A stretch of 64,000 nucleotides of DNA from Rhodosorus marinus CCMP1338. Lineage: Eukaryota; Plantae; Rhodophyta. Of the stretch, positions 1-61,000 are shown piece by piece (position 1 is the stretch's first letter; each line of letters opens with the position of its first letter). Made by a program: the position numbers and the translations under genes. The DNA lies in NCBI GenBank assembly GCA_029953675.1, contig JAMWBK010000004.1:62001-126000 (forward strand). Direction: 5' to 3'. A model generated the notes under the pieces. That model was given only the letters and a program-made list of their open reading frames with translations. It searched no databases and was not told the origin of the DNA.

Positions 1-552
1 GACGGCTGCCGCCTTCACGCTGCTCTCCCGTTCGGAGAGCCCGTCAGTGTGCCTCGGGGACAGAAACTGCGCCGAGAAACGGTCGAACGCGAAATGCAGG
101 GCGACCTGTGGGTGCGAATGCAACCAGCGGGCGCTCTCAGGCCACTGTTCGGTGGGCTTGACCAGTAAGGCCTAGAGGTACGTCGCCGCGTTCGATGTGA
201 CGAGGAAAACGACGTCCCGACCCTCGTAGTTGGCAAAAACAAAGCGTTCTCGACTACAGCCCAAGGATTGCGCAAAGATGTTCCGGAAATCGCGCATGTT
301 CGGAACCTGGCCACGGGTTGTTTGCGGCCGAACGTTCCGCACCCGGACAAATTGCAAAGCCGTTTCTGTAGGACCACCCTGAGGCTCTTGCGGTGGTAAG
401 AAACGCCCCTTACCTGCCGTACGGGCGCTAGTGGTGCCTTTCCGCAGCACCGAGATGTACGAAGGCTCCGCCTTGGGGCGACCACTCGCACCCGCCGGGG
501 CCGGAGGCTGCTGACCCACGGAGGGCTTGTCAGGAAGAAAAGTCCGCGCCAA
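1..552 (-). pseudogene. Decayed ORF1 of a second RLE non-LTR family (paralogue of family A ORF1), running off the left edge
   Basis: Translation SYISVLRKG..LQFVRVRNVRPQT..RDFRNIFAQSLG..FVFANYEG..VFLVTS..TYL*ALLV..HPQVALHFAFDRF aligns by eye with A ORF1 TYSQVLRRG..FHFVWMTNVRPQT..RDFRDTMASSLG..FLYVDFTG..CFLVTD..QFLQSLV..RPHVSLFVEFDRF. In-frame TAG at 172-174; the frame is closed just upstream of 552. Confidence 0.8.
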
Positions 553-3695: not shown

Positions 3696-4226
3696 TCAGA
3701 GAACGGTAAAACGAAAAAATGACATCGCGTCAGCAACTTCCTGAGTTTTGGATAGCCCGAACCGTTGTCATGCAGCGTTCGCCAGCTATTTGGCAGCATA
3801 ATCAATCAAAGCTCTGGCAGAGTTCATAGAGTTACCCAGCTCTCTGTGATTAGAGAGACGGTGTCACGTTTGGGCTCACAGGAAATTCTTAGTATGCCGC
3901 CCATTCGTCTTGCTTCACAAGTTCACTAACTCACGGCCCGCGGTACAACCCGATAAACCGATCGGGTGTTCATAGTGTGCATAGAATCGAAACCAAAGAA
4001 GGCAGACATTGTGGAAGCACTAGTCAATGTCATCGACGGCAACCGGAATGCAGCATGAGGTCAGCGCTCTCGCGAGCGGATCCCGGATTCGGAGGAATCA
4101 TCGAGGTTCGTACGAGGATAACAGATCCTTCGTAACGCAACCCCGTAGCATTTCCTACGCTTTACATTGTAATCCCAGTTGACGTTATGACTAATAGCCC
4201 AGTAGCCTTTATTCATCCTAGATTTA

Positions 4227-4605
4227 CAACCAGAGGCAGGGCAACCAGAGGCAGGGCAACCAGAGGCAGGGCAACCAGAGGCAGGGCAACCAGAGGCAGG
4301 GCAACCAGAGGCAGAGCAACCAGAGGCAGGGCAACCAGAGGCAGGGCAACCAGAGGCAGGGCAACCAGAGGCAGGGCAACCAGAGGCAGGGCAACCAGAG
4401 GCAGGACGATCAGAGGCAGGGCAACCAGAGGCAGGGCAACCAGAGGCAGGGCAACCAGAGGCAGGACGACCAGAGGCAGGACAACCAGAGGCAGGGCAAC
4501 CAGAGTCAGGGAAACCAGGGGCAGGGAAACCAGAGGCAGGGCAACCAGAGGCAAGAACCCACGGCAGGGTAACCAGAGGCAGGGCAACCCACCGCAGGGC
4601 AACCC
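4227..4605. repeat. 15-bp minisatellite (CAACCAGAGGCAGGG)n, ~25 units, degenerate toward the right end
   Basis: Directly visible; one 14-nt unit near 4553 shifts the phase. Confidence 0.95.
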
Positions 4606-4746
4606 AATTTGCTTTTTTAGTAATATTATAGTAAATAACGCGAACACTTTCAAACTATTCTAGTTCTTTTATCTTGGCCACAAAAAATAGAAATAATTGG
4701 TGGGTCGGTTTTCTTTTACCAATGATAAAGACGAATGGATCACGCA

Positions 4747-8920: not shown

Positions 8921-9169
8921 AGAGTTTTCGGTTTCGTGAGGGTGTATGGTGCTGGCTTTTGGTGGTTTTGAGTCGCAACTGTGTTCTTCGGTGGGAGGCG
9001 CTTCTTTCTGCAGCCTTTCCCCCGCATCTTCTAGTGGTGTGGTGCGTGCTGGGGGTTGCTAGCGCCCCTTGGAGGTCGTGGTTGTTTTTCTTTGGTTGCA
9101 AACGTTGGGAACAAGTTCTCTTTTTGGGGGTTTCGTGGGGGAATCGGTTTTTCACACCTTCCAATCGTT

Positions 9170-10468
9170 ATGGTTGGGGTCTCCCCACCCATTCCGGCGG
9201 ACGGAGCCGTTCTCTCAGCGCGTGTGGAGCTCAGCGTGGGCGGGTTTAGTACCGCGGCCACCCTCACGGACTGCGCTGACGAGTTGGCCCATGGGATCTG
9301 CTCGAAACTGACGAGTCTTCTTGTGACTGCTTCCCAGGAACACCGCCTGCCCCTACTGATCGCCTATTTGGAGCGCTTCTCCGCCTCCGCGCCTGCCCCA
9401 TACCCCCCGGTGCCCGTCCCCGCGGATCCGCACGGTACAGCGGGGCCTGCCTCCACCCGACCCGAGCGCTCCGCTCCGGTCATTCCTGATTCCGACTGGC
9501 CTACCCCTATTCAAGGACAGACGCCTCCTGGGCCCGCGTCGGGCCCGAATCCTGCTCCCTCCAGTGCCCCACGTGCGACCTATTCGCAGGTCCTACGCAG
9601 AGGCTCTTCTGAACAACGCACGACGGCAATGGTGCGTATGATGCCACAACACATCCCTATTGACTCTTCTCGCCAACTATCTCCGTTCCACTTTGTTTGG
9701 ATGACGAACGTGCGTCCCCAGACCCCCTCTCGTGGTCGGGGCCGCGCGCCCGTCCACTACCGCGATTTTCGCGACACCATGGCTTCCTCCCTTGGGGTCG
9801 CCCCATCTGAATTCCTATATGTGGACTTCACGGGCCCTCATGCCTGTTTTCTTGTTACTGACTCGGCTTACCAGTTCCTTCAATCCCTTGTAACCACCCC
9901 CGCGCCCCAGCGCTCTGCTCTGGCCAACATGATACTGACTCGTCCTCATGTCTCTTTGTTTGTCGAGTTCGATCGTTTTGACGCCGGCTGGGTTCCTCCA
10001 TCGGCCTTGCAAAACCTGGATGCCTCGCAGGCTTCGGTTGTCGCGCTACACACTCATGCGGCGCGGCTCTCGCGCATACAGGCCAGCCTCTTCGCGCGTT
10101 TTCCTCCTCGCGGGGTCCTCCGCACCGCGCTAGAGGCCTTCCTCTCCACTGAGGCCACCCTGCTGGAAGCCCACCCTGCGTTTGACTTTCTGCCGCCGAC
10201 TCTTGAGCACCCTTCCTCCCCTCGCCCTGTCTCCGAGGCTCGTGACACCGACATGGCAGGAGCACCATCGGCCTCTCCGAATCCGCTGGCTCTGGACACC
10301 CCCAGTCAAGACTCCGCTGCTGAAAACCCTGTGTCTACTTTCTTCAGGTCTTTTAGTTCCTTCGTGCGCCCCCCACGTAAGCGTCGTGCGGCTCCTGAGC
10401 CTCCCTCCGAGGCACCTCCTCCGGATATTCGATCTGCCTTCCCGACTGAGGGGAGGCCCGATGTCTGA
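9170..10468 (+). CDS. Family A ORF1 (432 aa from first ATG), Pro/Ser-rich with a putative RRM-like core
   Basis: Open here and in the 61277-62680 copy; conserved in the paralogue at 1-552; TGA overlaps the ORF2 ATG (ATGTCTGA, 10461-10468). Confidence 0.8.
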   Translation: MVGVSPPIPADGAVLSARVELSVGGFSTAATLTDCADELAHGICSKLTSLLVTASQEHRLPLLIAYLERFSASAPAPYPPVPVPADPHGTAGPASTRPERSAPVIPDSDWPTPIQGQTPPGPASGPNPAPSSAPRATYSQVLRRGSSEQRTTAMVRMMPQHIPIDSSRQLSPFHFVWMTNVRPQTPSRGRGRAPVHYRDFRDTMASSLGVAPSEFLYVDFTGPHACFLVTDSAYQFLQSLVTTPAPQRSALANMILTRPHVSLFVEFDRFDAGWVPPSALQNLDASQASVVALHTHAARLSRIQASLFARFPPRGVLRTALEAFLSTEATLLEAHPAFDFLPPTLEHPSSPRPVSEARDTDMAGAPSASPNPLALDTPSQDSAAENPVSTFFRSFSSFVRPPRKRRAAPEPPSEAPPPDIRSAFPTEGRPDV

Positions 10469-13400
10469 GTCTTCCTCCTCCGCGTGCGTGTCGTCCCGGT
10501 TACCCCTGTTTACCAGTGACCGTTCAGCCTGGCATGAGCGTGTTCTCTCGTGGTTTTCGCACCTTGTCGCCTCCTACCCGGACGGTTCCCTTCCCCTTTG
10601 TCGTCAGAGCACGGCCGTACGGCTCCCTCGTCGACTTCATAAGCCCCTAGGATTGGTGTTGGATTTTCTCTGGCAGCAGGTCGCCGCGAACCCTCACTGC
10701 TCTCTTCGCTGGGAACTCTTGTTCTTTTTTCCCCGCCTCGTGCTCACCTCCTCTACCGTCCCCCTCAACCCACATCCTCGCCGGGTCCACCCTCGCCGAA
10801 AACTGCAAATGTTCCTTTCCGGCGACTTTGAGGACCTCGAACGTCTTTATTTCGCTTCTCTCTCTTCCTTTTCTCCTAGTGCTCCCTCAGCTTTTAGGTC
10901 TTCTCGACAGAATCGGGCGCGTCACGCGGTGGCAGGCGGTGATCTGCGGCGGGCAGCCGGGATCCTCCAGCAGCGGCAACCTGTGGTTCCATACTCCGAT
11001 GATCTTTCTTCACCGCTCCGTTTGCTCTTTCCCTCGGAAGGCTCCCCTTGGGACTCCTCGTTTGAATCAGTGTTGGAAGAGTACCGCGCCGCGCCACATC
11101 CCAGTGCGCGGTTAGTGGTAAATCTGGAGGCGGTGCGTGAGTTGGTTCATGATGCTCCGAAGGGCCGTTCCCCAGGGCCCTCGGGGCTGCGGGTGGAATA
11201 TCTCCGTTTCTTAAGTGATGAAGGTTTGAAGGCGTTGGCGTGGGTGGTCGAAGCGCTTGTGAATGGTGATCCCCTGTGTGAGTGTGCGTTGTTCTTGGTC
11301 GGGCGTTCGCAGTTGTGTCTGCTTTCGAAGCCCGGTCACACGGCCTCGAGCCCTGCTATTCGCCCTATTGGCCTGGTTGAGGTGGTCCGCAAATTGGCGG
11401 CGCGATGGTTAGTGAAAATCCTGGTTCCCGAATCCCGCCGTTTCTTTGGGCACGTGCAGTTAGGCGTGGGCTATCGTGGTGGCTGTGAGTTGTTGTCTGT
11501 TTTACTCCGTTCGGAAATGGCGTACTCCCCAGATTCTGGGCTCCTCTCTGTCGATTTTACCAATGCGTTCAACCGCGTCTCTCGTCCGGCTCTCATGCAC
11601 GTGGTGCGCGAAGTCTTCCCCGTAGGCTTTCCCTTTGTTAGTAGACTTTATTCTCCGCTTGGTCGTGGGGCTACCTATGACACCCTTGGCGCTTCCTCAC
11701 ACACGTTTGCGGCGCGCACAGGGGTACAACAGGGTGATCCCTTGTCCCCTTTCCTACATGCCTGTGGACTACAACTCGTCTTGCTTTGTCTTCGCTCCGA
11801 ATTCCCGCAGGTTCGTACGGTTGCATACCACGACGACGTGTGCCTCCTGGGGCCCCCTGATACTCTAGCACTCGCTTATGATCGTCTCCGCTCCTTGGCT
11901 TCGCGGGTTGACCTGGAGGTTAATCATCACAAATCGTTCTACTGGGGAGGTGTAGCTGCACAAGAGCAGCAGGTACCTGCGTCGTTCCAGGATATTTGGA
12001 GACCGGATGGTTTTGTCCACTTAGGCATCCCCTACGGGTCGCCGTCCTTCGTTGAAGGCGAGTTCCTGCAGCTCCTCGGTAAGCACAGACAGCTGGTTGC
12101 AGAGCTTCGACGGCTACCTCCGGGCTTTCTCCAGTGCTCGTTGTTGCTGTTTCGGTATTGTTGCAGTCAGCGGTTAACCTATTGGCTTCGCTCACTTCCA
12201 ACTCATTGGAGCCGGTGGTTGGCCACTCGTGCGGATGCTGAAGGTTTCCGTGACCTGGGGTATTTTCTCGATGAAGAGCTGAGCGCTCTGCCGCGACCCA
12301 CCTGTGATGTTGTGCGCGCCCAGGTAGGCCTCCCATTGCGATTGGGGGGACTGGGCCTCTGCAATCGTGTTGTGGTCCAACCTGCAGCCGCAGTAGAGGC
12401 CTGGGGAACCGCACTTCCCACTTTGAGCAGCTTGGGTATCTCGAAGTTCCGCAATTTGATGGCGAGCCTCTCGCGGGGTGTCTTGCTTCCCAGCGTACCG
12501 GAAAGCGCCCAAGACTTGTTTCTGGAGCTCCAAACCGCCCTGAATTCCTGTACTAGTCTCCCCGAAACCGTTCAACCCCATCTTCCTGACTGGCGAGCTG
12601 TATTTGACCGCTCTCGAGGCTCCGCCCCGGGGATTCGTCCTGCGCCTGAACCTGTTCTAGGGGAGATTGACCCAGTGGTTGCCGCAGAAGAAGAAGTTCC
12701 AGTTGATCCTCCTGATGATTCCCAGCGCGCTGGGAGCCGAGCTCAAGCACGCACGGATGCGCTGCAAAATATCCTTTCTTAGGACTTGCACCGTGCTGCA
12801 TATGGCCGACTCCTCGCGCAGATGGTCTCATCTTCTCGCGCTCGCGCCCGCCTACGTAGTCTTGGAGGGGTTCTTAGCTCTCAGTGGCTCATGACCGTAC
12901 CAGCCTTTCCGCCACTCACACTGTCGGATTTCGAAGTGCGTACTTCACTGCGCTTATACCTCGGCTTACATCAGCCCCCTTGGCCGTACGAGATGGGTTC
13001 GTCGTGCCCTCTCTGCTCTCAGACTGAAGACAACGCAGATTTTGGCGCCCACCTGCTCGCTAGTTGCCCGGCGGTGAAAGGTGCTCGAACCCGCCGCCAC
13101 ACACGGATCTTGAACCTGTTATACCGGGAACTTCGGCCTATAGTCCGGCAAGCCGGTCTGGAAATCGAACGTGAGAAACCTTTACCCGTCGCGGACTTTC
13201 AAAATGATGAACGCCGTGTAGCCGACCTGGTGATCACCTGTGACGACAGCCGCCGTACCACATACGTTGATCTTGCTGTTCCTAACCCTCAAGCTAGTCG
13301 TTATCTCCCGGCTGCGGGGGAGCGCCGTGGATCTGCCGCCGCCAGCATGAGACGCCGCAAAGAGATCAAATACGCGGGGGCTTTGTCTTCCCCTGGTGTT

Positions 13401-13604
13401 CGTGCTTCGGCACTAGCACATCGCTTGGTACCCCTGATCATTGAGTGCTTTGGGTTCATGGACTCTGTTGGTTCTCGCTGGCTTCGGGAGTTGTTCCGCG
13501 AACGCCCTGACCGTCTTCAATCGTTGTTTACCCGCTTAAGTTTCCTGCTGTGGCGCATGAATGCCGCTTTGATGTTGGAGGCGCGAGTACTTCGCCGCGC
13601 TTAG
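10461..13604 (+). pseudogene. Family A ORF2: RT, CCHC knuckle, RLE (~1047 codons), split by one in-frame TAG at 12780-12782
   Basis: KGRSPGPSG, IRPIG, QLGVG..GGCE, DFTNAFN, GVQQGDPLSP, AYHDD, LPLRLGGLGL; CPLC..H..C; RHTRI, VADLVI, TYVDL, KEIKY, PLIIECFG. Confidence 0.92.
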
Positions 13605-13883
13605 TCTTTTTTTCCCCTCGGGGTTTTTTTTTCAGCCTCCGATTAAACCATTCGTTCGTATCACAGCGCGATCTCTAAAGCAGCACGGATCATCTGAGGG
13701 TTAATTGCCGACCGTAACAACTGACTCTACGGATCCCCATCGACTGATGAAGTCACCAAGTTCTGTTTAGCACTGACAAGACGTCGCACTGCGCCGTACT
13801 TGTCCGTGATCATTCCCGACGTTGTCCAGAAGTTTTTGTGGTCTGTAAACTTGGGCTTTTGTCTGTTGGTAGGATATTCCTTA

Positions 13884-19823: not shown

Positions 19824-22800
19824 GAATGAATGGTTTAATCGGAGGCTGAAAAAAAAACCCCGAGGGGAAAAAAAGACTAAGCGCGGCGAAGTACTCGCGC
19901 CTCCAACATCAAAGCGGCATTCATGCGCCACAGCAGGAAACTTAAGCGGGTAAACAACGATTGAAGACGGTCAGGGCGTTCGCGGAACAACTCCCGAAGC
20001 CAGCGAGAACCAACAGAGTCCATGAACCCAAAGCACTCAATGATCAGGGGTACCAAGCGATGTGCTAGTGCCGAAGCACGAACACCAGGGGAAGACAAAG
20101 CCCCCGCGTATTTGATCTCTTTGCGGCGTCTCATGCTGGCGGCGGCAGATCCACGGCGCTCCCCCGCAGCCGGGAGATAACGACTAGCTTGAGGGTTAGG
20201 AACAGCAAGATCAACGTATGTGGTACGGCGGCTGTCGTCACAGGTGATCACCAGGTCGGCTACACGGCGTTCATCATTTTGAAAGTCCGCGACGGGTAAA
20301 GGTTTCTCACGTTCGATTTCCAGACCGGCTTGCCGGACTATAGGCCGAAGTTCCCGGTATAACAGGTTCAAGATCCGTGTGTGGCGGCGGGTTCGAGCAC
20401 CTTTCACCGCCGGGCAACTAGCGAGCAGGTGGGCGCCAAAATCTGCGTTGTCTTCAGTCTGAGAGCAGAGAGGGCACGACGAACCCATCTCGTACGGCCA
20501 AGGGGGCTGATGTAAGCCGAGGTATAAGCGCAGTGAAGTACGCACTTCGAAATCCGACAGTGTGAGTGGCGGAAAGGCTGGTACGGTCATGAGCCACTGA
20601 GAGCTAAGAACCCCTCCAAGACTACGTAGGCGGGCGCGAGCGCGAGAAGATGAGACCATCTGCGCGAGGAGTCGGCCATATGCAGCACGGTGCAAGTCCT
20701 AAGAAAGGATATTTTGCAGCGCATCCGTGCGTGCTTGAGCTCGGCTCCCAGCGCGCTGGGAATCATCAGGAGGATCAACTGGAACTTCTTCTTCTGCGGC
20801 AACCACTGGGTCAATCTCCCCTAGAACAGGTTCAGGCGCAGGACGAATCCCCGGGGCGGAGCCTCGAGAGCGGTCAAATACAGCTCGCCAGTCAGGAAGA
20901 TGGGGTTGAACGGTTTCGGGGAGACTAGTACAGGAATTCAGGGCGGTTTGGAGCTCCAGAAACAAGTCTTGGGCGCTTTCCGGTACGCTGGGAAGCAAGA
21001 CACCCCGCGAGAGGCTCGCCATCAAATTGCGGAACTTCGAGATACCCAAGCTGCTCAAAGTGGGAAGTGCGGTTCCCCAGGCCTCTACTGCGGCTGCAGG
21101 TTGGACCACAACACGATTGCAGAGGCCCAGTCCCCCCAATCGCAATGGGAGGCCTACCTGGGCGCGCACAACATCACAGGTGGGTCGCGGCAGAGCGCTC
21201 AGCTCTTCATCGAGAAAATACCCCAGGTCACGGAAACCTTCAGCATCCGCACGAGTGGCCAACCACCGGCTCCAATGAGTTGGAAGTGAGCGAAGCCAAT
21301 AGGTTAACCGCTGACTGCAACAATACCGAAACAGCAACAACGAGCACTGGAGAAAGCCCGGAGGTAGCCGTCGAAGCTCTGCAACCAGCTGTCTGTGCTT
21401 ACCGAGGAGCTGCAGGAACTCGCCTTCAACGAAGGACGGCGACCCGTAGGGGATGCCTAAGTGGACAAAACCATCCGGTCTCCAAATATCCTGGAACGAC
21501 GCAGGTACCTGCTGCTCTTGTGCAGCTACACCTCCCCAGTAGAACGATTTGTGATGATTAACCTCCAGGTCAACCCGCGAAGCCAAGGAGCGGAGACGAT
21601 CATAAGCGAGTGCTAGAGTATCAGGGGGCCCCAGGAGGCACACGTCGTCGTGGTATGCAACCGTACGAACCTGCGGGAATTCGGAGCGAAGACAAAGCAA
21701 GACGTTGTAGTCCACAGGCATGTAGGAAAGGGGACAAGGGATCACCCTGTTGTACCCCTGTGCGCGGCGCAAACGTGTGTGAGGAAGCGCCAAGGGTGTC
21801 ATAGGTAGCCCCACGACCAAGCGGAGAATAAAGTCTACTAACAAAGGGAAAGCCTACGGGGAAGACTTCGCGCACCACGTGCATGAGAGCCGGACGAGAG
21901 ACGCGGTTGAACGCATTGGTAAAATCGACAGAGAGGAGCCCAGAATCTGGGGAGTACGCCATTTCCGAACGGAGTAAAACAGACAACAACTCACAGCCAC
22001 CACGATAGCCCACGCCTAACTGCACGTGCCCAAAGAAACGGCGGGATTCGGGAACCAGGATTTTCACTAACCATCGCGCCGCCAATTTGCGGACCACCTC
22101 AACCAGGCCAATAGGGCGACTAGCAGGGCTCGAGGCCGTGTTGCCGGGCTTCGAAAGCAGACACAACTGCGAACGCCCGACCAAGAACCACGCACGCTCA
22201 CACAGGGGATCACCATTCACAAGCGCTTCGACCACCCACGCCAACGCCTTCAAACCTTCATCACTTAAAAAACGGAGATATTCCACCCGCAGCCCCGAGG
22301 GCCCTGGGGAACGGCCCTTTGGAGCATCATGAACCAACTCACGCACCGCCTCCAGATTGACCACTAACCGCGCACTGGGATGTGGCGCGGCGCGGTACTC
22401 TTCCAACACTGATTCAAACGAGGAGTCCCAAGGGGAGCCTTCCGAGGGAAAGAGCAAACGGAGCGGTGAAGAAAGATCATCGGAGTATGGAACCACAGGT
22501 TGCCGCTGCTGGAGGATCCCGGCTGCCCGCCGCAGATCACCGCCTGCTACCGCGTGACGCGCCCGATTCTGTCGAGAAGACCTAAAAGCTGAGGGAGCAC
22601 TAGGAGAAAAGGAAGAGAGAGAAGCGAAATAAAGACGTTCGAGGTCCTCAAAGTCGCCGGAAAGGAACATTTGCAGTTTTCGGCGAGGGTGGACCCGGCG
22701 AGGATGTGGGTTGAGGGGGACGGTAGAGGAGGTGAGCACGAGGCGGGGAAAAAAGAACAAGAGTTCCCAGCGAAGAGAGCAGTGAGGGTTCGCGGCGACC

Positions 22801-24392
22801 TGCTGCCAGAGAAAATCCAACACCAATCCTAGGGGCTTATGAAGTCGACGAGGGAGCCGTACGGCCGTGCTCTGACGACAAAGGGGAAGGGAACCGTCCG
22901 GGTAGGAGGCGACAAGGTGCGAAAACCACGAGAGAACACGCTCATGCCAGGCTGAACGGTCACTGGTAAACAGGGGTAACCGGGACGACACGCACGCGGA
23001 GGAGGAAGACTCAGACATCGAACCTCCCCTCAGTCGGGAAGGCAGATCGAATATCCGGAGGAGGTGCCTCGGAGGGAGGCTCAGGAGCCGCACGACGCTT
23101 ACGCGGGGGGCGCACGAAGGAACTAAAAGACCTGAAGAAAGTAGACACAGGGTTTTCAGCAGCGGAGTCTTGACTGGGGGTGTCCAGAGCCAGCGGATTC
23201 GGAGAGGCCGATGGTGCTCCTGCCATGTCGGTGTCACGAGCCTCGGAGACAGGGCGAGGGGAGAAAGGGTGCTCAAGAGTCGGCGGCAGAAGGTCAAACG
23301 CAGGGTGGGCTTCCAGCAGGGTGGCCTCAGTGGAGAGGAAGGCCTCTAGCGCGGTGCGGAGGACCCCGCGAGGAGGAAAACGCGCGAAGAGGCTGGCCTG
23401 TATGCGCGAGAGCCGCGCCGCATGAGTGTGTAGCGCGACAACCGAAGCCTGCGAGGCATCCAGGTTTTGAAAGGCCGACGGAGGAACCCATCCGGCGTCA
23501 AAACGATCGAACTCGACAAACAAAGAGACATGAGGACGAGTCAGTATCATGTTGGCCAGAGCAGAGCGCTGGGGCGCGGGGTGGTTACAAGGGATTGAAG
23601 GAACTGGTAAGCCGAGTCAGTAACAAGAAAACAGGCATGAGGGCCCGTGAAGTCCACATATAGGAATTCAGACGGGGCGACCTCAAGGGAGGAAGCCATG
23701 GTGTCGCGAAAATCGCGGTAGTGGACGGGCGCGCGGCCCCGACCACGAGAGGGGGTCTGGGGACGCACGTTCGTCATCCAAACAAAGTGGAACGGAGATA
23801 GTTGGCGAGAAGAGTCAATAGGGATGTGTTGTGGCATCATACGCACCATTGCCGTCGTGCGTTGTTCAGAAGAGCCTCTGCGCAGGACCTGCGAATAGGT
23901 CGCACGTGGGGCACTGGAGGGAGCAGGATTCGGGCCCGACGCGGGCCCAGGAGGCGTCTGTCCTTGAATAGGAGTAGGCCAGTCGGAATCAGGAATGACC
24001 GGAGCGGAGCGCTCGGGTCGGGTGGAGGCAGGCCCCGCTGTACCGTGCGGATCCGCGGGGACGGGCACCGGGGGGTATGGGCCAGGCGCGGAGGCGGAGA
24101 AGCGCTCCAAATAGGCGATCAGTAGGGGCAGGCGGTGTTCCTGGGAAGCAGTCACAAGAAGACTCGTCAGTTTCGAGCAGATCCCATGGGCCAACTCGTC
24201 AGCGCAGTCCGTGAGGGTGGCCGCGGTACTAAACCCGCCCACGCTGAGCTCCACACGCGCTGAGAGAACGGCTCCGTCCGCCGGAATGGGTGGGGAGACC
24301 CCAACCATAACGATTGGAAGGTGTGAAAAACCGATTCCCCCACGAAACCCCCAAAAAGAGAACTTGTTCCCAACGTTTGCAACCAAAGAAAA
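19824..24392 (-). mobile_element. Family A copy 2, lacking ~160 bp of 5' UTR; defective
   Basis: Near-identical to copy 1; 1-bp deletion near 23580 (ORF1), 2-bp deletion near 21706 (ORF2), same TAG before the RLE; tail CCATTCATTC. Confidence 0.93.
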
Positions 24393-24461: not shown

Positions 24462-24715
24462 GAATGAATGAATGAATGAATGGTTTAATCGGAGGCTGAA
24501 AAAAAAAACCCCGAGGGGAAAAAAAGACTAAGCGCGGCGAAGTACTCGCGCCTCCAACATCAAAGCGGCATTCATGCGCCACAGCAGGAAACTTAAGCGG
24601 GTAAACAACGATTGAAGACGGTCAGGGCGTTCGCGGAACAACTCCCGAAGCCAGCGAGAACCAACAGAGTCCATGAACCCAAAGCACTCAATGATCAGGG
24701 GTACCAAGCGATGTG
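24462..24715 (-). mobile_element. Family A 3' fragment (~255 bp) with (TTCA)n tail
   Basis: Matches the A 3' end; five GAAT units on the + strand. Confidence 0.9.
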
Positions 24716-24935: not shown

Positions 24936-26247
24936 AGTTTTTGGTTTCGTGAGTGTATGGTGCTCGCTTTTTTGGTGGTTTTGAGTCGCAATTGTGTTCT
25001 TAGGTGGGAGGCGCTTCTTTCTGCAGCCTTTCCCCCGCATCTTCTAGTGGTGTGGTGCGTGCTGGGGGTTGCTAGCGCCCCTTGGAGGTCGTGGTGGTTT
25101 TTCTTTGGTTGCAAACGTTGGGAACAAGTTCTCTTTTTGGGGGTTTCGTTGGGGAATCGGTTTTTCACACCTTCCTATCGTTATGGTTGGGGTTTCCCCA
25201 CCTATTCCGGTGGACGGAGCCGTTCTCTCAGCGCCCGTGGAGCTCAGCGTGGGCGGGTTTAGTACCGCGGCCACCCTCACGGACTGCGCTGACGAGTTAG
25301 CCCATGGGATCTGCTCGAAACTGACGAGTCTTCTTGTGACTGCTTCCCAGGAACACCGCCTGCCCCTGCTGATCGCCTATTTGGAGCGCTTCTCCGCCTC
25401 CGCGCCTGCCCCATACCCCCCGGTGCCCGTCCCCGCGGATCCGCACGGTACAGCGGGGCCTGCCTCCACCCGACCCGAGCGCTCCGCTCCGGTCATTCCT
25501 GATTCCGACTGGCCTACCCCTATTCAAGGACAGACGCCTCCTGGGCCCGCGTCGGGCCCGAATCCTGCTCCCTCCAGTGCCCCACGTGCGACCTATTCGC
25601 AGGTCCTACGCAGGGGCTCTTCTGAACAACGCACGACGGCATGGTGCGTATGATGCCACAACACATCCCTATTGACTCTTCTCGCCAACTATCTCCGTTC
25701 CACTTTGTTTGGATGACGAACGTGCGTCCCCAGACCCCCTCTCGTGGTCGGGGCCGCGCGCCCGTCCACTACCGCGATTTTCGCGACACCATGGCTTCCT
25801 CCCTTGGGGTCGCCCCGTCTGAATTCCTATATGTGGACTTCACGGGCCCTCATGCCTGTTTTCTTGTTACTGACTCGGCTTACCAGTTCCTTCAATCCCT
25901 TGTAACCACCCCCGCGCCCCAGCGCTCTGCTCTGGCCAACATGATACTGACTCGTCCTCATGTCTCTTTGTTTGTCGAGTTCGATCGTTTTGACGCCGGA
26001 TGGGTTCCACCGTCGGCCTTGCAAAACCTGGATGCCTCGCAGGCTTCGGTTGTCGCGCTACACACTCATGCGGCGCGGCTCTCGCGCATACAGGCGAGCC
26101 TCTTCGCGCGTTTTCCTCCTCGCGGGGTCCTCCGCACCGCGCTAGAGGCCTTCCTCTCCACTGAGGCCACCCTGCTGGAAGCCCACCCTGCGTTTGACCT
26201 TCTGCCGCCGACTCTTGAGCACCCTTCCTCCCCTCGCCCTGTCTCCG
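24936..26247 (+). mobile_element. Family A copy 4: intact 5' end, ORF1 frameshifted near 25640, 3' part lost
   Basis: Matches 8923-10230; stops ~26 bp before a family B tail. Confidence 0.9.
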
Positions 26248-26273
26248 GGGTTCCAGTAAGTTTCTCCCTAGAT

Positions 26274-35470: not shown

Positions 35471-35529
35471 GCGCTAATCGTGATTCTCCCCATTCCCCCA
35501 CAATTACACCCACAACTCGCCATCCAAAA

Positions 35530-41850: not shown

Positions 41851-44800
41851 TTACAGGGGTCATTAGCACAGCCTGAAGCGCTACGCATGGCGTGAAAAAG
41901 GAACTAAGAACTAGGTAGGGAAGCGTGTAAACCCAGGCGAGCATATCCTTACGCGGTAGGGAAGGCGTACGAGACCATTTGATTCCCAAGAAAGGATTTA
42001 AAAGAGGCGGCGAGGCCAATACGACTGCCCGAGTCTCTCAGTTTCAGTCTCTGATTAAACAAATTCGTTTCTTCAATGCAAGGCTAATAAAGCCAGGCTA
42101 ATGAAACCAGCCAGCTAGTACGGATATTAAGGCTTGGAAGCCGGGGAGGCGGTAGCCAGCCTCTTGAGACGATTTTCTTCTCTTCCTTCTCTTCTTGTAC
42201 TCTATCCCCTGCTACACTACTAGGATTCTCGATATTATAACGAGTCAACTTCTCGCTAATCTTTGCCTACCCCGTTACTCTGGGACGAACCACTTGCTTC
42301 GGCATCGGCACCTCATAGCGACCTGATACGGGCACAGAAGGCTCTACCCTTGCGCCTCGGAGGCTTTGGAGTGGATGACCAGCGTCTAGCCTGCTCGACT
42401 GCGATGGTAGCCTCCTGGGCCATCAATTTTCCTACCCTTGTGGGACTTAGGTTCCCTAGTGCCTGTCTTTTGACGTGGGTGCTGACGAACGATGACCCAG
42501 TCGACCTTCCGCACCCGCTACTGCGCCTGCAAGAGACGTTTGGTCGGTGCAATGCCGTGCCGGAAGAGAATCGATCAAAGTTCAACTCCTGGAGGGAGAT
42601 GCTGTAAGCATCGAATGAGGTTGTAGTGGAACCACATTACAAGTGGAATCTATGGTTAAGTGGATGGATGGATTGGATGGATTGGTTGGATAGATGGATT
42701 GGATGGATTGATTGGATAGATGGATTGGATGGATGGGCCTCGCCAGAATACCCCTTCACAACGTCCGTAGTTTTTGCGTTGATACGTGGTCTGTGGTTAA
42801 AGTAGAGCGACGCAAGCTAGATGTTTAGTGCAATGGGGAGCGTGGATTGCCGCTAAGCCGGGCGTGGCGACGCTAACATAAGCGGGCAGACTCTTAGACG
42901 AACCACTTGCTTCGGCATTGGCACCTGACAGGAACCTGATACGGGCTCATATGGCTCTACCCTTGCCCCTGGGAGGCTTTGGAGTGGATGACCGGCATCT
43001 TTTCTGCTCGACTGCGACGGTAGCCTACGGGGGCACCGCTCTTCACACCCTTGTGAGATTTAGGTTCCGCAGAGCCTGCCTTTTAACTTGGGTGCTGACG
43101 AAAGATGACCCAGTCAACCTTCCGCAGCCGTTACTGCGCATCTATGACGGTCTGCAACAGGCGTTTCGCGGTACAATGCCGTGCCGGAAGAGAATCAATC
43201 TAAGTTCAGTCTTGGAAGGAGATGCTATGGGGACGCATTGAGTCTGTAGTGGAATCTATCGTTAATCGCGTGCTGGCCGACGATGGGGAAGCCAGACCCC
43301 CTTCACCCGCGACGGATTACCCTTGTATGAGTAGATCATGGAGCTCACGCCCTGATATTATCCAACATAGCCTCACTTGGGGCCAACACAGTGCTGATCA
43401 CTCAATCTTGCTCAACTCTCTGCTTACACCACCTACCACCACGGCTCGTCTACGGGGCCTGGGAAGTCATCTATTCCACCTATGGCTAACCACTCCAACC
43501 TCGTCACCGACTAGCGCTTTCCAGTTCTGGACCGCAGCACGCATCTGTGGCGTATGAACGCTGCTTTGATGTTGGAGGCGCGCGATCTTCGCCGCTCTTA
43601 GTCATTTTTTCCGGTGGCCGGCGCTGCCGTCTCTCCGTTCGTGGAGCTGCGCGCGGGAGCATTCAGCACCCAGGCCACTCTCAGCAACTACGACGAAGCG
43701 TCGTCCCACACACTCGTCTCAAAGCTGACCAGCCTTCTTTTCGTTGCTTCCCAGGAGAACCGCCTGCCCTCGCTGACGGCGTACCTGGAAAAATTTCCTG
43801 TCAGCGCGGGTGCCTCTGTCCTCCCCCCCACCGCTCATGCTGGGGGGAGCTCTGCACCCCGTCACCCCGTCCTGCCTCAGTCGTCCGGCGCGCTCCGACC
43901 CGACCATCCCTCCTAATTGTGTTCCCCTCCATATCTCCGGCCAAAAACCCCCTGGGTTCTGCTTGGGGCCGAATCCAGCCCCTGCGAGTGGCTCTCGACC
44001 CTCCTACTCTCACAAGTCCTTCGTCGGGGTTCCTCTGAAGAACGCACGACGGCCATTGTGCGTATGATACCTTCCCCCGTGACCACTCCTGCATTCTCCC
44101 GCCAGCTCTCTCCGTTCCATCTCATCTGGATGACGAGCGTGCACCCTCAGGCCCCTTCTCGTGGTCGCTGCTCCGCCCTCGCCGCTCAGGGCTCTATCAA
44201 TTTATTTTTTTGATTGAAATGTGCTCGACGTGTGGTTTACAAATTGGAAGTCATTGTGATCGCTGATGGCATCACGATATTTGCCTCGTTTCTGAGCTTA
44301 GCTTTAGCGTTGCTGCAGTATAGCCGGTTGTACAGGCGGCACGAGCGACCAGATGGGCTCTTAGCGGGGACTCTTATTCGACATCAAGACTATTCTGCAC
44401 CGGCACGATGATGGCGAAGAAAAATGCCTGGTCGCGACGGCTCTATTTTGTTGGTCTCATCTTCCCGAGATCGGGCCCGCCTACGTAGTCTTGGAAGGTG
44501 TATCAGCTCACACTGGCTCATGAGCGTCCCTGCTTTTCCGCCACTCACACTGGCAGATTTCGAAGTGCACACTTCTCTACGTTTATACGGGGTTTGCATC
44601 AGCCGCACTAGCCTGCCGAGATGGGTTCGCCATGCCCTCTATACTCTCAGAACAAATCTACTGCGGATTTTGGCGCCCACCTCCTCGGCAGCTGCCCCGC
44701 TGTGAAAGGCGCCCGAACCCGACCGCATACGCGGATCTTGAACCTGTTATACCGCGAACTTTGACCTCTTGTACGGCAAGCCGGTCTTGAAGTTGAAAGT

Positions 44801-57879: not shown

Positions 57880-58088
57880 AAGGCGCGTGATCTTCTTGAT
57901 TCCGCAGAAAAACAAAACGCAGAGTGTTCTGCTGTGTTGTTTTTTTTTCCCTTCCCCGTTCGGATTTCTGTTTTCCGGTCTCCGAATGAACACATCATGT
58001 TTCAAATTACTTCTATGCCGTCCTTAGAACGGATTCTAGTTGTATCGGTGACTCAATTTCCGCAAGAAAGATTGCTGGCATCAACCAC

Positions 58089-61000
58089 GAACGAATGGTT
58101 TAATCGGAGGCTGAAAAAAAAACCCCGAGGGGAAAAAAAGACTAAGCGCGGCGAAGTACTCGCGCCTCCAACATCAAAGCGGCATTCATGCGCCACAGCA
58201 GGAAACTTAAGCGGGTAAACAACGATTGAAGACGGTCAGGGCGTTCGCGGAACAACTCCCGAAGCCAGCGAGAACCAACAGAGTCCATGAACCCAAAGCA
58301 CTCAATGATCAGGGGTACCAAGCGATGTGCTAGTGCCGAAGCACGAACACCAGGGGAAGACAAAGCCCCCGCGTATTTGATCTCTTCGCGGCGTCTCATG
58401 CTGGTGGCGGCAGATCCACGGCGCTCCCCCGCAGCCGGGAGATAACGACTAGCTTGAGGGTTAGGAACAGCAAGATTAACGTATGTGGTACGGCGGCTGT
58501 CGTCACAGGTGATCACCAGGTCGGCTACACGGCGTTCATCATTTTGAAAGTCCGCGACGGGTAAAGGTTTCTCACGTTCGATTTCCAGACCGGCTTGCCG
58601 GACTATAGGCCGAAGTTCCCGGTATAACAGGTTCAAGATCCGTGTGTGGCGGCGGGTTCGAGCACCTTTCACCGCCGGGCAACTAGCGAGCAGGTGGGCG
58701 CCAAAATCTGCGTTGTCTTCAGTCTGAGAGCAGAGAGGGCACGACGAACCCATCTCGTACGGCCAAGGGGGCTGATGTAAGCCGAGGTATAAGCGCAGTG
58801 AAGTACGCACTTCGAAATCCGACAGTGTGAGTGGCGGAAAGGCTGGTACGGTCATGAGCCACTGAGAGCTAATAACCCTCCAAGACTACGTAGGCGGGCG
58901 CGAGCGCGAGAAGATGAGACCATTTGCGCGAGGAGTCGGCCATATGCAGCACGGTGCAAGTCCCAAGAAAGGATATTTTGCAGCGCATCCGTGCGTGCTT
59001 GAGCTCGGCTCCCAGCGCGCTGGGAATCATCAGGAGGATCAACTGGAACTTCTTCTTCTGCGGCAACCACTGGGTCAATCTCCCCTAGAACAGGTTCAGG
59101 CGCAGGACGAATCCCCGGGGCGGAGCCTCGAGAGCGGTCAAATACAGCTCGCCAGTCAGGAAGACGGGGTTGAACGGTTTCGGGGAGACTAGTACAGGAA
59201 TTCAGGGCGGTTTGGAGCTCCAGAAACAAGTCTTGGGCGCTTTCCGGTACGCTGGGAAGCAAGACACCCCGCGAGAGGCTCGCCATCAAATTGCGGAACT
59301 TCGAGATACCCAAGCTGCTCAAAGTGGGAAGTGCGGTTCCCCAGGCCCCTACTGCGGCTGCAGGTTGGACCACAACACGATTGCAGAGGCCCAGTCCCCC
59401 CAATCGCAATGGGAGGCCTACCTGGGCGCGCACAACATCACAGGTGGGTCGCGGCAGAGCGCTCAGCTCTTCATCGAGAAAATACCCCAGGTCACGGAAA
59501 CTTTCAGCATCCGCACGAGTGGCCAACCACCGGCCCCAATGAGTTGGAAGTGAGCGAAGCCAATAGGTTAACCGCTGACTGCAACAATACCGAAACAGCA
59601 ACAACGAGCACTGGAGAAAGCCCGGAGGTAGCCGTCGAAGCTCTGCAACCAGCTGTCTGTGCTTACCGAGGAGCTGCAGCAACTCGCCTTCAACGAAGGA
59701 CGGCGACCCGTAGGGGATGCCTAAGTGGACAAAACCATCCGGTCTCCAAATATCCTGGAACGACGCAGGTACCTGCTGCTCTCGTGCAGCTACACCTCCC
59801 CAGTAGAACGATTTGTGATGATTAACCTCCAGGTCAACCCGCGAAGCCAAGGAGCGGAGACGATCATAAGCGAGTGCTGGAGTATCAGGGGGCCCCAGGA
59901 GGCACACGTCGTCGTGGTATGCAACCGTACGAACCTGCGGGAATTCGGAGCGAAGACAAAGCAAGACGAGTTGTAGTCCACAGGCATGTAGGAAAGGGGA
60001 CAAGGGATCACCCTGTTGTACCCCTGTGCGCGCCGCATACGTGTGTGAGGAAGCGCCAAGGGTGTCATAGGTAGCCCCCCGACCAAGCGGAGAATAAAGT
60101 CTACTAACAAAGGGAAAGCCTACAGGGAAGACTTCGCGCACCACGTGCATGAGAGCCGGACGAGAGACGCGGTTGAACGCATTGGTAAAATCTACAGAGA
60201 GGAGCCCAGAATCTGGGGAGTACGCCATTTCCGAACGAAGTAAAACAGACAACAACCCACAGCCACCACGATAGCCCACGCCTAACTGCACGTGCCCAAA
60301 GAAACGGCGGGATTCGGGAACCAGGATTTTCACTAACCATCGCGCCGCCAATTTGCGGACCACCTCAACCAGGCCAATAGGGCGAATAGCAGGGCTCGAG
60401 GCCGTGTGGCCGGGCTTCGAAAGCAGACACAACTGCGAACGCCCGACCAAGAACCACGCACACTCACACAGGGGATCACCATTCACAAGCGCTTCGACCA
60501 CCCACGCCAACGCCTTCAAACCTTCATCACTTAAGAAACGGAGATATTCCACCCGCAGCCCCGAGGGCCCTGGGGAACGGCCCTTCGGAGCATCATGAAC
60601 CAACTCACGCACCGCCTCCAGATTGACCACTAACCGCGCACTGGGATGTGGCGCGGCGCGGTACTCTTCCAACACTGATTCAAACGAGGAGTCCCAAGGG
60701 GAGCCTTCCGAGGGAAAGAGCAAACGGAGCGGTGAAGAAAGATCATCGGAGTATGGAACCACAGGTTGCCGCTGCTGGAGGATCCCGGCTGCCCGCCGCA
60801 GATCACCGCCTGCCACCGCGTGACGCGCCCGATTCTGTCGAGAAGACCTAAAAGCTGAGGGAGCACTAGGAGAAAAGGAAGAGAGAGAAGCGAAATAAAG
60901 ACGTTCGAGGTCCTCAAAGTCGCCGGAAAGGAACATTTGCAGTTTTCGGCGAGGGTGGACCCGGCAAGGATGTGGGTTGAGGGGGACGGTAGAGGAGGTG

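Follow-up and report, generated by a model that had tools for sequence, protein, structure and literature searches.

A young two-ORF retrotransposon of the CRE supergroup in Rhodosorus marinus with a conserved ORF1 whose core is predicted to be RRM-like

Introduction

RNA-binding ORF1 proteins are regarded as characteristic of the LINEs that carry an APE. Within the RLE-bearing LINEs, SLACS and CZAR, which belong to the trypanosomatid CRE clade, have two ORFs. As a group, the RLE-bearing LINEs (R2, R4, NeSL, HERO, and CRE) usually have a single ORF and often insert site specifically (PMC3636483). A stretch of 64,000 nucleotides from the red alga Rhodosorus marinus CCMP1338 (here called the window) contains an element in which a 432-amino-acid ORF1 precedes an ORF2 encoding a reverse transcriptase (RT) and a restriction-like endonuclease (RLE). 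A preliminary description, made by inspection of the DNA, took this locus for a CRE-like RLE retrotransposon with a separate, unrecognized ORF1 showing an RRM-like pattern. The locus therefore raises the questions of whether ORF1 is a real gene, where the element belongs among the RLE-bearing LINEs, and what the ORF1 protein (ORF1p) might do. Our search of the literature on transposons of Stylonematophyceae and on Rhodosorus retrotransposons found no reports.

Results

Structure of the element. The copy under study, copy A (8923..13657, forward strand), is a full-length non-LTR retrotransposon of ~4.7 kb (about 4,735 bp), delimited by a 5′ boundary at 8923 that is common to three copies (A, C, and D), each with different flanks, and by a 3′ end, ...CAGCCTCCGATTAAACCATTCGTTC, that is common to at least eight copies and fragments. 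The 5′ untranslated region (UTR) of 247 nt (8923..9169, forward), which presumably carries a putative internal promoter, is the most variable stretch of the element (3.2% variable sites), being 95 to 96% identical among copies A, C, and D. ORF1 (9170..10468, forward, stop codon included) runs from an ATG at 9170 to a stop codon at 10466-10468, and ORF2 (10461..13604, forward; 1,047 codons) runs from an ATG at 10461 to a stop codon at 13602-13604 in the +1 frame relative to ORF1. Direct reading shows that the ORF2 ATG overlaps the ORF1 stop codon in the sequence ATGTCTGA (10461..10468, forward), which is identical in copies A, B, and C. The 3′ UTR of 53 nt (13605..13657, forward) ends in CCATTC(G/A)TTC, a short (ATTC)n-like tail without poly(A). 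A stable hairpin in the 3′ UTR was considered and rejected (RNA fold z = −0.04).

Copies in the window and their insertion sites. In addition to copy A, the window holds copies B and C, both nearly full or full length, a 5′ part (copy D), and several 5′-truncated fragments, all at 98 to 99% identity. Copy B (19824..24392, reverse strand; 99.4% identical to A) is truncated inside the 5′ UTR, is flanked by an 8-bp candidate target duplication, and carries a 1-bp deletion in ORF1 and a 2-bp deletion in ORF2. Copy C (58087..62813, reverse; 98.8% identical) is full length, with a 9-bp in-frame deletion in ORF1 and a 1-bp deletion in ORF2. Copy D (24936..26253, forward) has a 1-bp deletion and comprises only the 5′ UTR and most of ORF1. 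ORF1 is thus defective in every copy but A, and ORF2 is interrupted in both A and B by the same in-frame TAG (12780-12782 in copy A; ORF2 codon 774), which reads TGG in copy C; no intact copy of the element lies within the 64-kb window. It had been proposed that each defect is private or correctable, and the shared TAG shows that the privacy part of this proposal was partly wrong. Because three long copies and several fragments are 98 to 99% identical and have common 5′ and 3′ ends, the element is, judged by its sequence, a young and recently active family.

Target duplications of 7 to 13 bp surround five of the 5′-truncated copies; they were also sought at the full-length copies A and C and were not found there. 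The 3′ flank of copy A does not hold the continuation of an interrupted LTR-element pol gene. Over at least eight copies, the flanks and target duplications are unrelated, and a fixed target sequence is absent. A search of the whole window against Rfam identified no RNA gene and no spliced-leader gene, so that there is no sign of an RNA gene as the target.

Two further families are represented by ORF1 remnants. The second (fam2; 10..525, reverse) is an ORF1 core with one in-frame stop that runs off the window and is 36% identical to ORF1 amino acids 113 to 292. On two outside contigs (L004 and L005), a fam2-type ORF1 lies upstream of an ORF2 of the type that we call family E. The third (fam3; 43608..44177, forward) is the N-terminal half of an ORF1 with one stop, followed by the 3′ part of an internally deleted ORF2 (44451-45252). 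Families A and E both have two ORFs and are about 36% identical in each.

ORF2 places the element in the CRE supergroup. ORF2 consists of an N-terminal region without a zinc finger, an RT, a linker, a CCHC motif, and an RLE. The RT domain (ORF2 amino acids 299 to 493; 11355..11939, forward) matches Pfam RVT_1 with an E value of 5.8e-11, contains the catalytic YHDD (11823-11840), and matches the R2 and L1 ORF2 reverse transcriptases among PDB sequences at about 1e-9. Downstream, motif conservation identifies a CCHC motif and a PD-(D/E)XK-type RLE (together 13005..13373, forward), the former as CX2CX11HX4C (13005-13067) and the latter through RH (13092-13109), ADL (13212-13235), VDL (13263-13280), and K (13350-13373). 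The H and the fourth ligand C of the CCHC motif, the RH, the Asp of VDL, and a few other residues are invariant in comparison with family E and metagenome relatives; by eye, most rows of the alignment also have the Asp of ADL and the Lys. The CCHC region is also matched by an R2 protein (9nl2; E = 6e-4), and Pfam found no APE domain in ORF2.

When ORF2 was compared by BLASTP with a small reference set of 18 published RLE-LINE proteins (PMC5678591, supplement 10), the best matches were all to CRE references: Cre-1_BM (8e-24, 26% identity), SLACS (1e-19), and CRE2 (1e-18). Matches to R2, NeSL, and HERO were 8e-10 or weaker, and the matches listed included no R4 reference. A distance-based neighbor-joining tree (522 columns, 200 bootstraps) separated CRE, CRE-II, and the window element from the rest with 100% support and joined the window element to CRE-II with 79% support. 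Both comparisons bear out the original designation of the element as CRE-like and place it in the CRE supergroup, closest to the elements that Repbase calls CRE-II.

The closest RT and linker sequences are those of CRE-II (Cre-1_BM of Bombyx mori and Cre-1_HM of Hydra) and of the metagenomic proteins P0001 to P0043. These relatives share with ORF2 the C-terminal CCHC motif, the RH/(P)AD/D/K endonuclease, and, by eye, a conserved N-terminal segment that in the relatives follows the fingers. Sequence identity to these relatives is low; in the tree, families A and E of the window stand on a separate branch with 100% support. Whereas the relatives examined consist of a single long ORF with N-terminal C2H2-like fingers, the window element is fingerless and has a separate ORF1. 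The finger pattern was matched in the first 500 residues of P0003, P0010, P0014, and P0027; P0008 did not match it, although inspection by eye shows a stretch of Cys and His that resembles a finger. Amino acids 1 to 215 of ORF2 contain three Cys and no C2H2 or CCHC finger pattern, in agreement with the initial observation that no N-terminal zinc finger is obvious in ORF2.

ORF1 is conserved and under purifying selection. The amino acid sequence of ORF1 is 36 to 47% identical to those of the two other window families and 66 to 74% identical to that of an outside contig. The ratio dN/dS was 0.285 against the related locus L003 (0.17 in the core, its lowest value). It was 0.22 when copy A was compared with copy C and 0.33 to 0.46 in the comparisons with fam2 and fam3, and the substitutions among copies are distributed 3/7/15 over the three codon positions. 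Since ORF1 is conserved across families and on an outside contig with dN/dS values of 0.17 to 0.46, it stands above chance expectation, and we conclude from these comparisons that ORF1 is a real gene under purifying selection.

Homologues of ORF1 are rare. ORF1 had no match in Pfam, nothing below E = 0.65 among PDB sequences, and no match in a word-indexed search of 5.8 billion proteins, while an ORF1 profile run against 1.84 billion representative proteins found only six fragments, all from short, red-alga-like contigs. Metagenome loci searched with a single ORF1 core yielded no related locus, and the loci around the metagenomic relatives P0002 and P0009 (L001 and L002) contained no ORF1-like sequence upstream of the RT. 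We also considered ORF1 as the split-off N-terminal part of a former single ORF and rejected this origin (hhalign probability, 0.1%; no phmmer match). ORF1 can accordingly be called separate and unrecognized, as it was at first reading, being unrelated to the N termini of its single-ORF relatives. Nor does it contain a CCHC knuckle, in agreement with the same reading: it contains only three Cys, and neither a CCHC nor a C2H2 pattern is present.

ORF1p can be divided into six regions. The N-terminal conserved region (amino acids 8 to 70; 9191..9379, forward) falls within the alignment of amino acids 8 to 193 to fam3, which is 47% identical overall; amino acids 1 to 70 are 62% identical to L003, with a dN/dS of 0.25. 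The Pro-rich linker that follows (amino acids 71 to 135; 9380..9574, forward; 20 Pro in 65 residues) is the least constrained part of ORF1 (dN/dS of 0.57 against L003). A basic helical segment (amino acids 136 to 170; 9575..9679, forward; pI 11.4) bears the motif (S/T)Y(S/I)xVLR(R/K)G, which is kept in all three families, and in the first of the two structural models described below it forms helices 3-9 and 12-22 with a pLDDT of about 75. The conserved core (amino acids 171 to 280; 9680..10009, forward), which is predicted to be RRM-like, contains an RG-rich loop, RPQTPSRGRGRAP (9713-9751). It is followed by a C-terminal helical region (amino acids 281 to 345; 10010..10204, forward; dN/dS of 0.22; model 1 helices 152-173 and 181-199, pLDDT of 65 to 72) and by an acidic, Pro-rich tail (10205..10465, forward). 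The tail is 73% identical to that of L003 and includes a conserved motif, FFRSFSSFVRPPRKRR (10340-10387), whose L003 counterpart, FFRSFNSFVRPPRKRR, differs by one substitution; by eye, the motif resembles a nuclear localization signal, and it may serve in nuclear import. ORF1p is not basic as a whole (pI 6.6; 8.0 for the core), and no coiled coil was identified in it.

The ORF1 core is predicted to have an RRM-like topology. All six core segments that had been quoted in support of an RRM-like pattern were located in the translation: FVWMTNV (amino acids 175 to 181), YRDFRDTMASSLG (197 to 209), FLYVDF (215 to 220), ACFLVT (225 to 230), AYQFLQSLV (233 to 241), and VSLFVEF (261 to 267). We obtained two AlphaFold (AF2) models, with mean pLDDT values of 62 and 68, from a shallow alignment of 9 to 10 sequences. 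Model 1 (amino acids 136 to 350) was too floppy, and its Foldseek matches were mixed (best E = 0.18). Model 2, which was narrower (mean pLDDT, 67.8), contains the elements E9-15, H33-43, E51-57, E60-66, H67-78, H86-93, and E98-101, that is, a β1-α1-β2-β3-α2-(α3)-β4 topology with a pLDDT of 79 to 87 at its center and low confidence for β4.

The top PDB neighbors of model 2 in Foldseek were RBM30 RRM1 (probability, 0.97), the DbpA RNA-binding domain (0.98), and L1 ORF1p (0.85), and RRM-type RNA-binding domains made up ~21 of the top 50 PDB matches. No match was significant at E ≤ 0.001 (best E = 0.023 in the PDB and 0.0086 in BFVD; TM of 0.4 to 0.5): the leading RRM matches lie below significance at E values of 0.02 to 0.04, as does a BFVD match to baculovirus FP25K (probability, 0.98; E = 0.04). 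Ferredoxin-like folds other than RRMs were also present among the matches (IA-2 ectodomain, Trop2, AsnC, and IS200 transposase). When 10 members of the core alignment were searched against Pfam at E ≤ 10, neither RRM nor Transposase_22 appeared, and the sole weak match was to xRRM (E = 0.24) in one member. By eye, VWMTNV in β1 of family A fits the RNP2 pattern [ILV][FY][ILV]xNL (fam2 has VRVRNV), and β3, (G/R)xxxFLVT, has one central aromatic residue only. The RRM-like reading is thus no more than suggestive: the order of strands and helices in the model agrees with it, and the Foldseek matches are led by RRMs, among them that of L1 ORF1p, but model confidence is moderate, no match is significant, and no RRM profile was matched. 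Because the Foldseek E values are 0.02 or higher for these RRMs, we regard an RRM-like core, which the models only suggest, as likely but unproven.

Discussion

We favor, with some reserve, the interpretation that the element is a bicistronic and young member of the CRE supergroup of non-LTR retrotransposons, with CRE-II as its nearest kin and with a lineage-specific ORF1p that is most likely an RNA-binding partner in a ribonucleoprotein (RNP). One transcript would bear both ORFs, with ribosomes that terminate on ORF1 most likely reinitiating on ORF2 where the stop and start codons overlap in AUGUCUGA. The ORF2 protein (ORF2p), with its RT, CCHC motif, and RLE, would nick the target and copy the RNA by target-primed reverse transcription, which would account for the 5′-truncated copies, the short target duplications, and the lack of a fixed target sequence. 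ORF1p, built from its N-terminal conserved region, Pro-rich linker, basic helix, RRM-like core with RG-rich loop, C-terminal helices, and tail with the RKRR motif, most likely binds the element RNA and assembles an RNP with ORF2p, so that the role of an L1-type ORF1 would be taken by an unrelated or unrecognizably diverged protein. Both RNA binding by ORF1p and translational coupling are inferred.

A rather unlikely alternative is that ORF1p has a generic ferredoxin-like fold and is not an RNA chaperone at all, acting instead as a DNA- or chromatin-binding or scaffold subunit that replaces a lost zinc-finger region of ORF2. By eye, ORF2 starts about just past the position of the finger-like motifs in the single ORF of the relatives; the Foldseek lists include ferredoxin-like folds that do not bind RNA, such as the DNA-binding HUH transposases IS608 and IS200; and the charge of ORF1p is near neutral. 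Against this, the insertions have no common target sequence, and a sequence-specific DNA binder is therefore not needed; ORF1 is not homologous to the N termini of the relatives (the hhalign probability given above); and it is RRM-type, RNA-binding domains that have the highest Foldseek probabilities.

It is less probable still that a +1 (or −2) frameshift in the overlap yields an ORF1-ORF2 fusion polyprotein, in which case the element would function as one ORF whose N-terminal domain is novel. Most RLE elements do encode a single polyprotein (PMC3636483), and the ORF2 frame is open from 10182, which leaves a stretch of 287 nt (10182-10468) open in the two frames. At 59% G+C, however, it is not rare for an alternative frame to stay open over a long distance, and an ATG lies exactly at the ORF1 stop codon and is kept there in three copies. 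Finally, the notion that ORF1 is a chance or decaying frame without a function of its own, which the absence of homologues from large databases and the defects in every copy other than A might seem to favor, is effectively refuted by the selection signal on ORF1, with dN/dS far under 1 at all levels of divergence, the codon-position bias, and the retention of ORF1 and its place upstream of ORF2 across families only 36% identical.

The lineage is of CRE type, dispersed, and recently active, and relatives of its conserved, selected ORF1 are not detectable. Should the core prove to be RRM-like, an RNP made of two proteins would have originated, or persisted, among the RLE-bearing LINEs as well, and ORF1p would offer comparative structural work a new, very divergent member of its kind. 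One may go further and imagine that a red-algal CRE branch lost its N-terminal zinc fingers and independently gained an RRM-fold ORF1, at the time when its insertion changed from targeted to dispersed, giving a convergent "L1-like" two-protein RNP in the oldest (RLE) group of LINEs; this scenario is possible, but we would not bet on it. The element also adds an active-looking LINE family for the stylonematophycean red algae. The practical stakes are modest, in that the element refines transposon classification and the picture of ORF1p evolution and opens no new mechanism.

The SLACS and CZAR elements belong to the same supergroup by RT and share the RLE endonuclease. They insert between nucleotides 11 and 12 of the spliced-leader miniexon, and CZAR carries C2H2 motifs (PMC5814959). 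The window element lacks such motifs, and its copies are dispersed, in contrast to the site-specific miniexon insertion of the classical CRE elements (CRE1, CRE2, SLACS, and CZAR). The target duplications that CRE elements make (PMC3636483) are also found here. In the profile search, with its six fragments in 1.84 billion proteins, homology between ORF1 and the ORF1 of SLACS or CZAR was not detectable.

L1-type ORF1p consists of a coiled coil, an RRM, and a C-terminal domain (CTD) (Pfam Transposase_22). Like it, the ORF1 described here lies upstream of ORF2 and has a core predicted to be RRM-like, and the human L1 ORF1p trimer (2ykq) was the second-best Foldseek match, below threshold at E = 0.033 and a probability of 0.85. 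The two do not match by sequence or by profile, neither an N-terminal coiled coil nor a CTD was recognized in the window protein, and L1 ORF1p is basic whereas the protein here is not basic overall; the partner of L1 ORF1p carries an APE, whereas ORF2 here carries an RLE. More generally, a typical ORF1p has one or two RRMs and multimerizes (PMC3905857).

A dispersed RLE LINE with two ORFs is also found outside the CRE group. EhLINE1 of Entamoeba histolytica belongs to an R4-like clade, that is, one other than CRE. It is a non-site-specific RLE LINE with separate ORF1 and ORF2 (PMC3118788; PMC1635306). The exhaustive protein profile search detected no sequence similarity between its ORF1 and that of the window element.

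The junction of the two ORFs also has a parallel in SART1, in which translation of the second ORF is reportedly coupled to that of the first through a stop/start at UAAUG. The ORF1 stop and the ORF2 start overlap in both elements, with an overlap of 8 nt (AUGUCUGA) in the window element compared with 1 nt in SART1.

Organization and coding capacity of family A

Family A is a two-ORF non-LTR retrotransposon of CRE type whose full-length copy A occupies window positions 8923 to 13657 on the + strand. As the preliminary description of the window had it, a 432-amino-acid ORF1 (+ strand, ATG at 9170, stop codon at 10466 to 10468) precedes the ORF that carries the reverse transcriptase (RT) and the restriction-like endonuclease (RLE); this ORF2 runs on the + strand, in the +1 frame, from an ATG at 10461 to 13604 (1,047 codons). 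Because its ATG lies within the octamer ATGTCTGA, the start codon of ORF2 overlaps the stop codon of ORF1, and the overlap AUGUCUGA is identical across three copies.

Pfam RVT_1 matched ORF2 at amino acids 299 to 493 (E = 5.8e-11), with the catalytic YHDD present, and in the PDB the ORF2 sequence matched R2 and L1 ORF2 reverse transcriptases at about 1e-9. At the C terminus, CX2CX11HX4C is followed by RH, ADL, VDL, and K motifs. The CCHC stretch matched a solved R2 protein (E = 6e-4), and the CCHC/RLE motifs are kept in family E, the second RLE family of the window, and in metagenomic relatives, the Asp of ADL and the Lys being recognized by eye in most rows. Two absences noted in the preliminary description held up: ORF1, with three Cys residues, contains no CCHC knuckle, and amino acids 1 to 215 of ORF2 contain no zinc finger pattern.

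Copies, ends, and insertion

Besides copy A, self-comparison of the window revealed two long copies on the − strand, copy B (24392 to 19824, 5' truncated inside the 5' UTR) and copy C (62813 to 58087), together with copy D (24936 to 26253, 5' part only) and at least five short 3' fragments; identity among all of these was 97 to 99%. Three 5' ends align at AGTTTT(C/T)GGTTTCGTGAG, with unrelated DNA upstream. The 3' ends all terminate in ...CAGCCTCCGATTAAACCATTC(G/A)TTC, one being extended as (ATTC)n, and poly(A) is absent. Direct duplications of 7 to 13 bp, unrelated in sequence (e.g., GTTAACCACATCA, GATCAATCTCG, and TCTAGATTGC), border five truncated copies. The common 3' ends, the variable 5' truncation, and the target duplications form the signature of target-primed reverse transcription, and the lack of relatedness among the targets shows that insertion is not site specific. 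Rfam found no RNA genes in the whole window.

None of copies A to D is intact. Copy A has an in-frame TAG (12780 to 12782), which recurs in copy B; copy B has also lost 1 bp from ORF1 and 2 bp from ORF2. Copy C has TGG at this codon but lacks 9 bp of ORF1, with the frame kept, and 1 bp of ORF2, and copy D has a 1-bp deletion. The earlier view that each defect is private to one copy therefore fails for the TAG, which lies between the RT/linker part and the CCHC-endonuclease part of ORF2. A premature stop common to copies A and B implies that a stop-bearing source was propagated, through either trans-mobilization by intact relatives or read-through.

Several 3' fragments adjoin copy B (24474 to 24718, − strand) or copy C (57318 to 57474, − strand, and 57650 to 57873, + strand), and since they lie within 100 to 250 bp of the ends of these long copies, insertions cluster or nest. 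The extended tail, (ATTC)5, belongs to one short 3' fragment near copy B or C. The 5' end of copy A interrupts, at 8922/8923, an LTR-retrotransposon pol fragment (7359 to 8922, − strand) comprising the RNase H end, the integrase zinc-binding domain, and the integrase core. We found no continuation of pol in 13658 to 13926, past the 3' end of copy A, so the junction involves deletion or later rearrangement.

Relationship to CRE elements

A word-indexed search returned 43 relatives of the ORF2 protein, only 24 to 34% identical and nearly all unnamed metagenome proteins. As references, we took 18 sequences from an RLE-LINE alignment (supplement 10 of PMC5678591) covering R2, R4/Dong, NeSL/Utopia, HERO, CRE (SLACS, CZAR, CRE1, and CRE2), and the Repbase group CRE-II (Cre-1_BM and Cre-1_HM). 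By BLASTP, the window ORF2 matched Cre-1_BM (E = 8e-24), SLACS (E = 1e-19), CRE2 (E = 1e-18), Cre-1_HM (E = 2e-14), and, as the best non-CRE sequence among the matches listed, R2_Dmel (E = 8e-10). The ORF2 of family E gave the same pattern, and the metagenomic relatives are clearly Cre-1_BM-like (38 to 40% identity, E down to 1e-139). In a neighbor-joining tree (522 columns, 200 bootstraps), the CRE, CRE-II, window, and metagenome sequences split from R2/R4/NeSL/HERO with 100% bootstrap support, and families A and E were joined at 100% and placed beside CRE-II at 79%. The BLASTP ranking and the tree, a distance method applied to a small reference set, therefore support the original designation of a CRE-like RLE retrotransposon.

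Family A works like a two-ORF LINE and, by its RT and endonuclease, is a member of the CRE supergroup. Unlike classical CRE elements, it has neither spliced-leader site specificity nor zinc fingers. In its CRE-II-like relatives, one long ORF encodes C2H2-like fingers ahead of the RT, whereas the window ORF2 is fingerless and starts at about the conserved segment that comes after the fingers in those relatives. SLACS and CZAR are known two-ORF RLE elements and precede family A as such. So does EhLINE1, a LINE in which a restriction-enzyme-like endonuclease is encoded along with ORF1 and ORF2 (PMC3118788). In a comparison made outside Repbase and Dfam, the two-ORF CRE-type combination in a red alga appears to be new, as do an ORF1 family whose detectable relatives are a handful of Rhodosorus-like fragments and the apparent replacement of the finger-bearing N terminus by a separate protein. 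We found no literature on Rhodosorus retrotransposons.

Selection on ORF1 and its distribution

ORF1 has two relatives elsewhere in the window, one (fam2) at 525 to 10 on the − strand, with 36% identity over amino acids 113 to 292, including the whole core, and one at 43608 to 44177 on the + strand, with 47% identity over amino acids 8 to 193. When 1.84 billion representative proteins were searched exhaustively with a profile, only six matches emerged, all unnamed and located on 0.9- to 1.5-kb contigs of Logan or JGI samples. With Pfam at E ≤ 10, 10 core members gave no match except xRRM in one (E = 0.24), and the PDB contained no sequence match to ORF1, which is thus as separate and unrecognized as had been claimed.

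One of the six matches, L003, carries a near-complete ORF1 of a sister family (66 to 74% amino acid identity). Against it, dN/dS (Nei-Gojobori) was 0.285 overall, 0.17 in the core (amino acids 171 to 280), 0.22 in the C-terminal helices, 0.25 in the N-terminal region, and 0.57 in the Pro-rich linker; the values were 0.33 to 0.46 against the two window families and 0.22 between copies A and C. Substitutions among copies numbered 3, 7, and 15 at codon positions 1, 2, and 3, respectively. Judged by these comparisons, ORF1 is a real gene that is under selection and restricted to this lineage.

On two outside contigs, L004 and L005, a fam2-type ORF1 lies upstream of family-E-type ORF2 sequence on the same strand. 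Since the two-ORF layout is common to two families whose identity is only about 36% in each of the genes, it is old within the lineage. The ORF1 and ORF2 sequences of L004 (Logan SRR32518361) and L005 (JGI 3300017118) are separated by only about 370 to 400 nt, far too little DNA, so that these contigs represent internally deleted copies or transcripts. JGI sample numbers such as that of L005 resemble those of MMETSP transcriptome assemblies, and such an origin would imply transcription. In L004, an ATG directly follows the ORF1 stop codon (TGAATG).

Origin of ORF1 as the detached N terminus of a single-ORF ancestor was rejected: profile-profile comparison with the N-terminal regions of nine relatives gave a probability of 0.1%, and phmmer found no match of ORF1 to these regions.

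Predicted fold of the ORF1 core

The preliminary description had read the core as resembling an RNA recognition motif (RRM), and the six segments that it quoted are all present, at amino acids 175 to 267. A model of amino acids 136 to 350, built on a 10-sequence alignment (mean pLDDT 62, pTM 0.58), gave the order strand, helix, hairpin, helix, low-confidence stretch (where β4 had been placed), and two long C-terminal helices; its best Foldseek match had E = 0.18. A second model, of amino acids 165 to 280 (mean pLDDT 67.8, 79 to 87 in the center; pTM 0.63), comprised E9-15, H33-43, E51-57, E60-66, H67-78, H86-93, and E98-101, a β-α-β-β-α-β order with an extra short helix ahead of a weakly predicted β4. 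Its best Foldseek neighbors in the PDB were RBM30 RRM1 (E = 0.023, probability 0.97), the human L1 ORF1p trimer (E = 0.033, probability 0.85), and the RRM-like RNA-binding domain of DbpA (probability 0.95 to 0.98); Rbfox, U2AF65, TAP, ACF, and YxiN were also among the matches. RRM-type RNA-binding domains made up about 21 of the top 50 matches, the remainder being other ferredoxin-like folds. No match of this model reached E ≤ 0.001, and TM-scores were 0.4 to 0.5; in a viral library, the best named matches, to baculovirus FP25K (probability 0.98, E = 0.04), were below threshold.

Inspected by eye, β1 of family A (VWMTNV) agrees with the RNP2 consensus, unlike that of the second family, and β3 retains one aromatic residue only. 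After β1 comes RPQTPSRGRGRAP, a basic loop that is rich in RG and conserved; whole ORF1p is not basic (pI 6.6). The RRM-like reading thus draws support from the predicted order and from its top Foldseek neighbors, which are RRMs, but not from a significant structural match, a Pfam profile, or a PDB sequence. On these models, a ferredoxin-like, RRM-type fold seems fairly probable, and the fold class and the position of the gene suggest that ORF1p may bind RNA. In APE-type LINEs, ORF1 proteins normally contain RRMs (PMC3905857).

Proposed working of family A

Transcription would start from the 247-nt 5' region, a putative promoter. ORF1p would be translated first and ORF2p most likely by reinitiation at the stop-start overlap; alternatively, a frameshift could fuse ORF1 and ORF2, given that neither frame has a stop codon across a common 287 nt. 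Once made, most likely by reinitiation, ORF2p would nick DNA with its restriction-like endonuclease, and reverse transcription would be primed at the conserved 3' terminus, yielding truncated copies with 7- to 13-bp duplications. Coating or chaperoning the RNA is the role usually ascribed to ORF1 proteins in other LINEs (PMC3905857), and ORF1p would most likely fill it by means of its RRM-like core and its basic segments. In ORF1p, the C-terminal helices might mediate self-association, and the conserved RKRR motif might serve nuclear import.

Other features of the window

An intronless gene for a 514-amino-acid astacin metalloprotease with an EGF domain (1636 to 3180, − strand) shares 93% identity with Rhodosorus marinus NDN08_001938, and two R. 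marinus paralogues show 82% and 36% identity; the window therefore belongs to Rhodosorus, a unicellular red alga of the Stylonematophyceae, or to a very near relative. Family E is represented by 5'-truncated copies at 13927 to 16644 (+), 26364 to 27959 (−), 32854 to 35532 (−), and 42263 to 43557 (+), about 36% identical to family A ORF2. They are partly arranged head to tail (13917 to 14200 repeats 15753 to 16036 at 99.6%), and the copy at 33349 to 35532 is split by a 144-bp family A 3' fragment with an 11-bp target duplication. An exact 20-bp sequence recurs at 13900 to 13919 and at about 10 other sites (e.g., 3655, 5599, 14828, 16664, 26283, 27074, 32723, and 32815), those at 14828 and 16664 lying just beyond the family E frame ends at 14808 and 16644; this sequence may represent the conserved 3' end of family E.

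A tandem 15-bp repeat at 4187 to 4663, surrounded by noncoding DNA, encodes (ATRGR)n when read in one frame and (LPLVA)n when read from the opposite strand. At 52427 to 53608, overlapping frames, three in all and on both strands, stay open for about 1.1 kb. This stretch probably represents repetitive DNA of simple sequence or low complexity and not a gene; one of its translations matches Pfam HC2, a low-complexity family (E = 5.7e-13).
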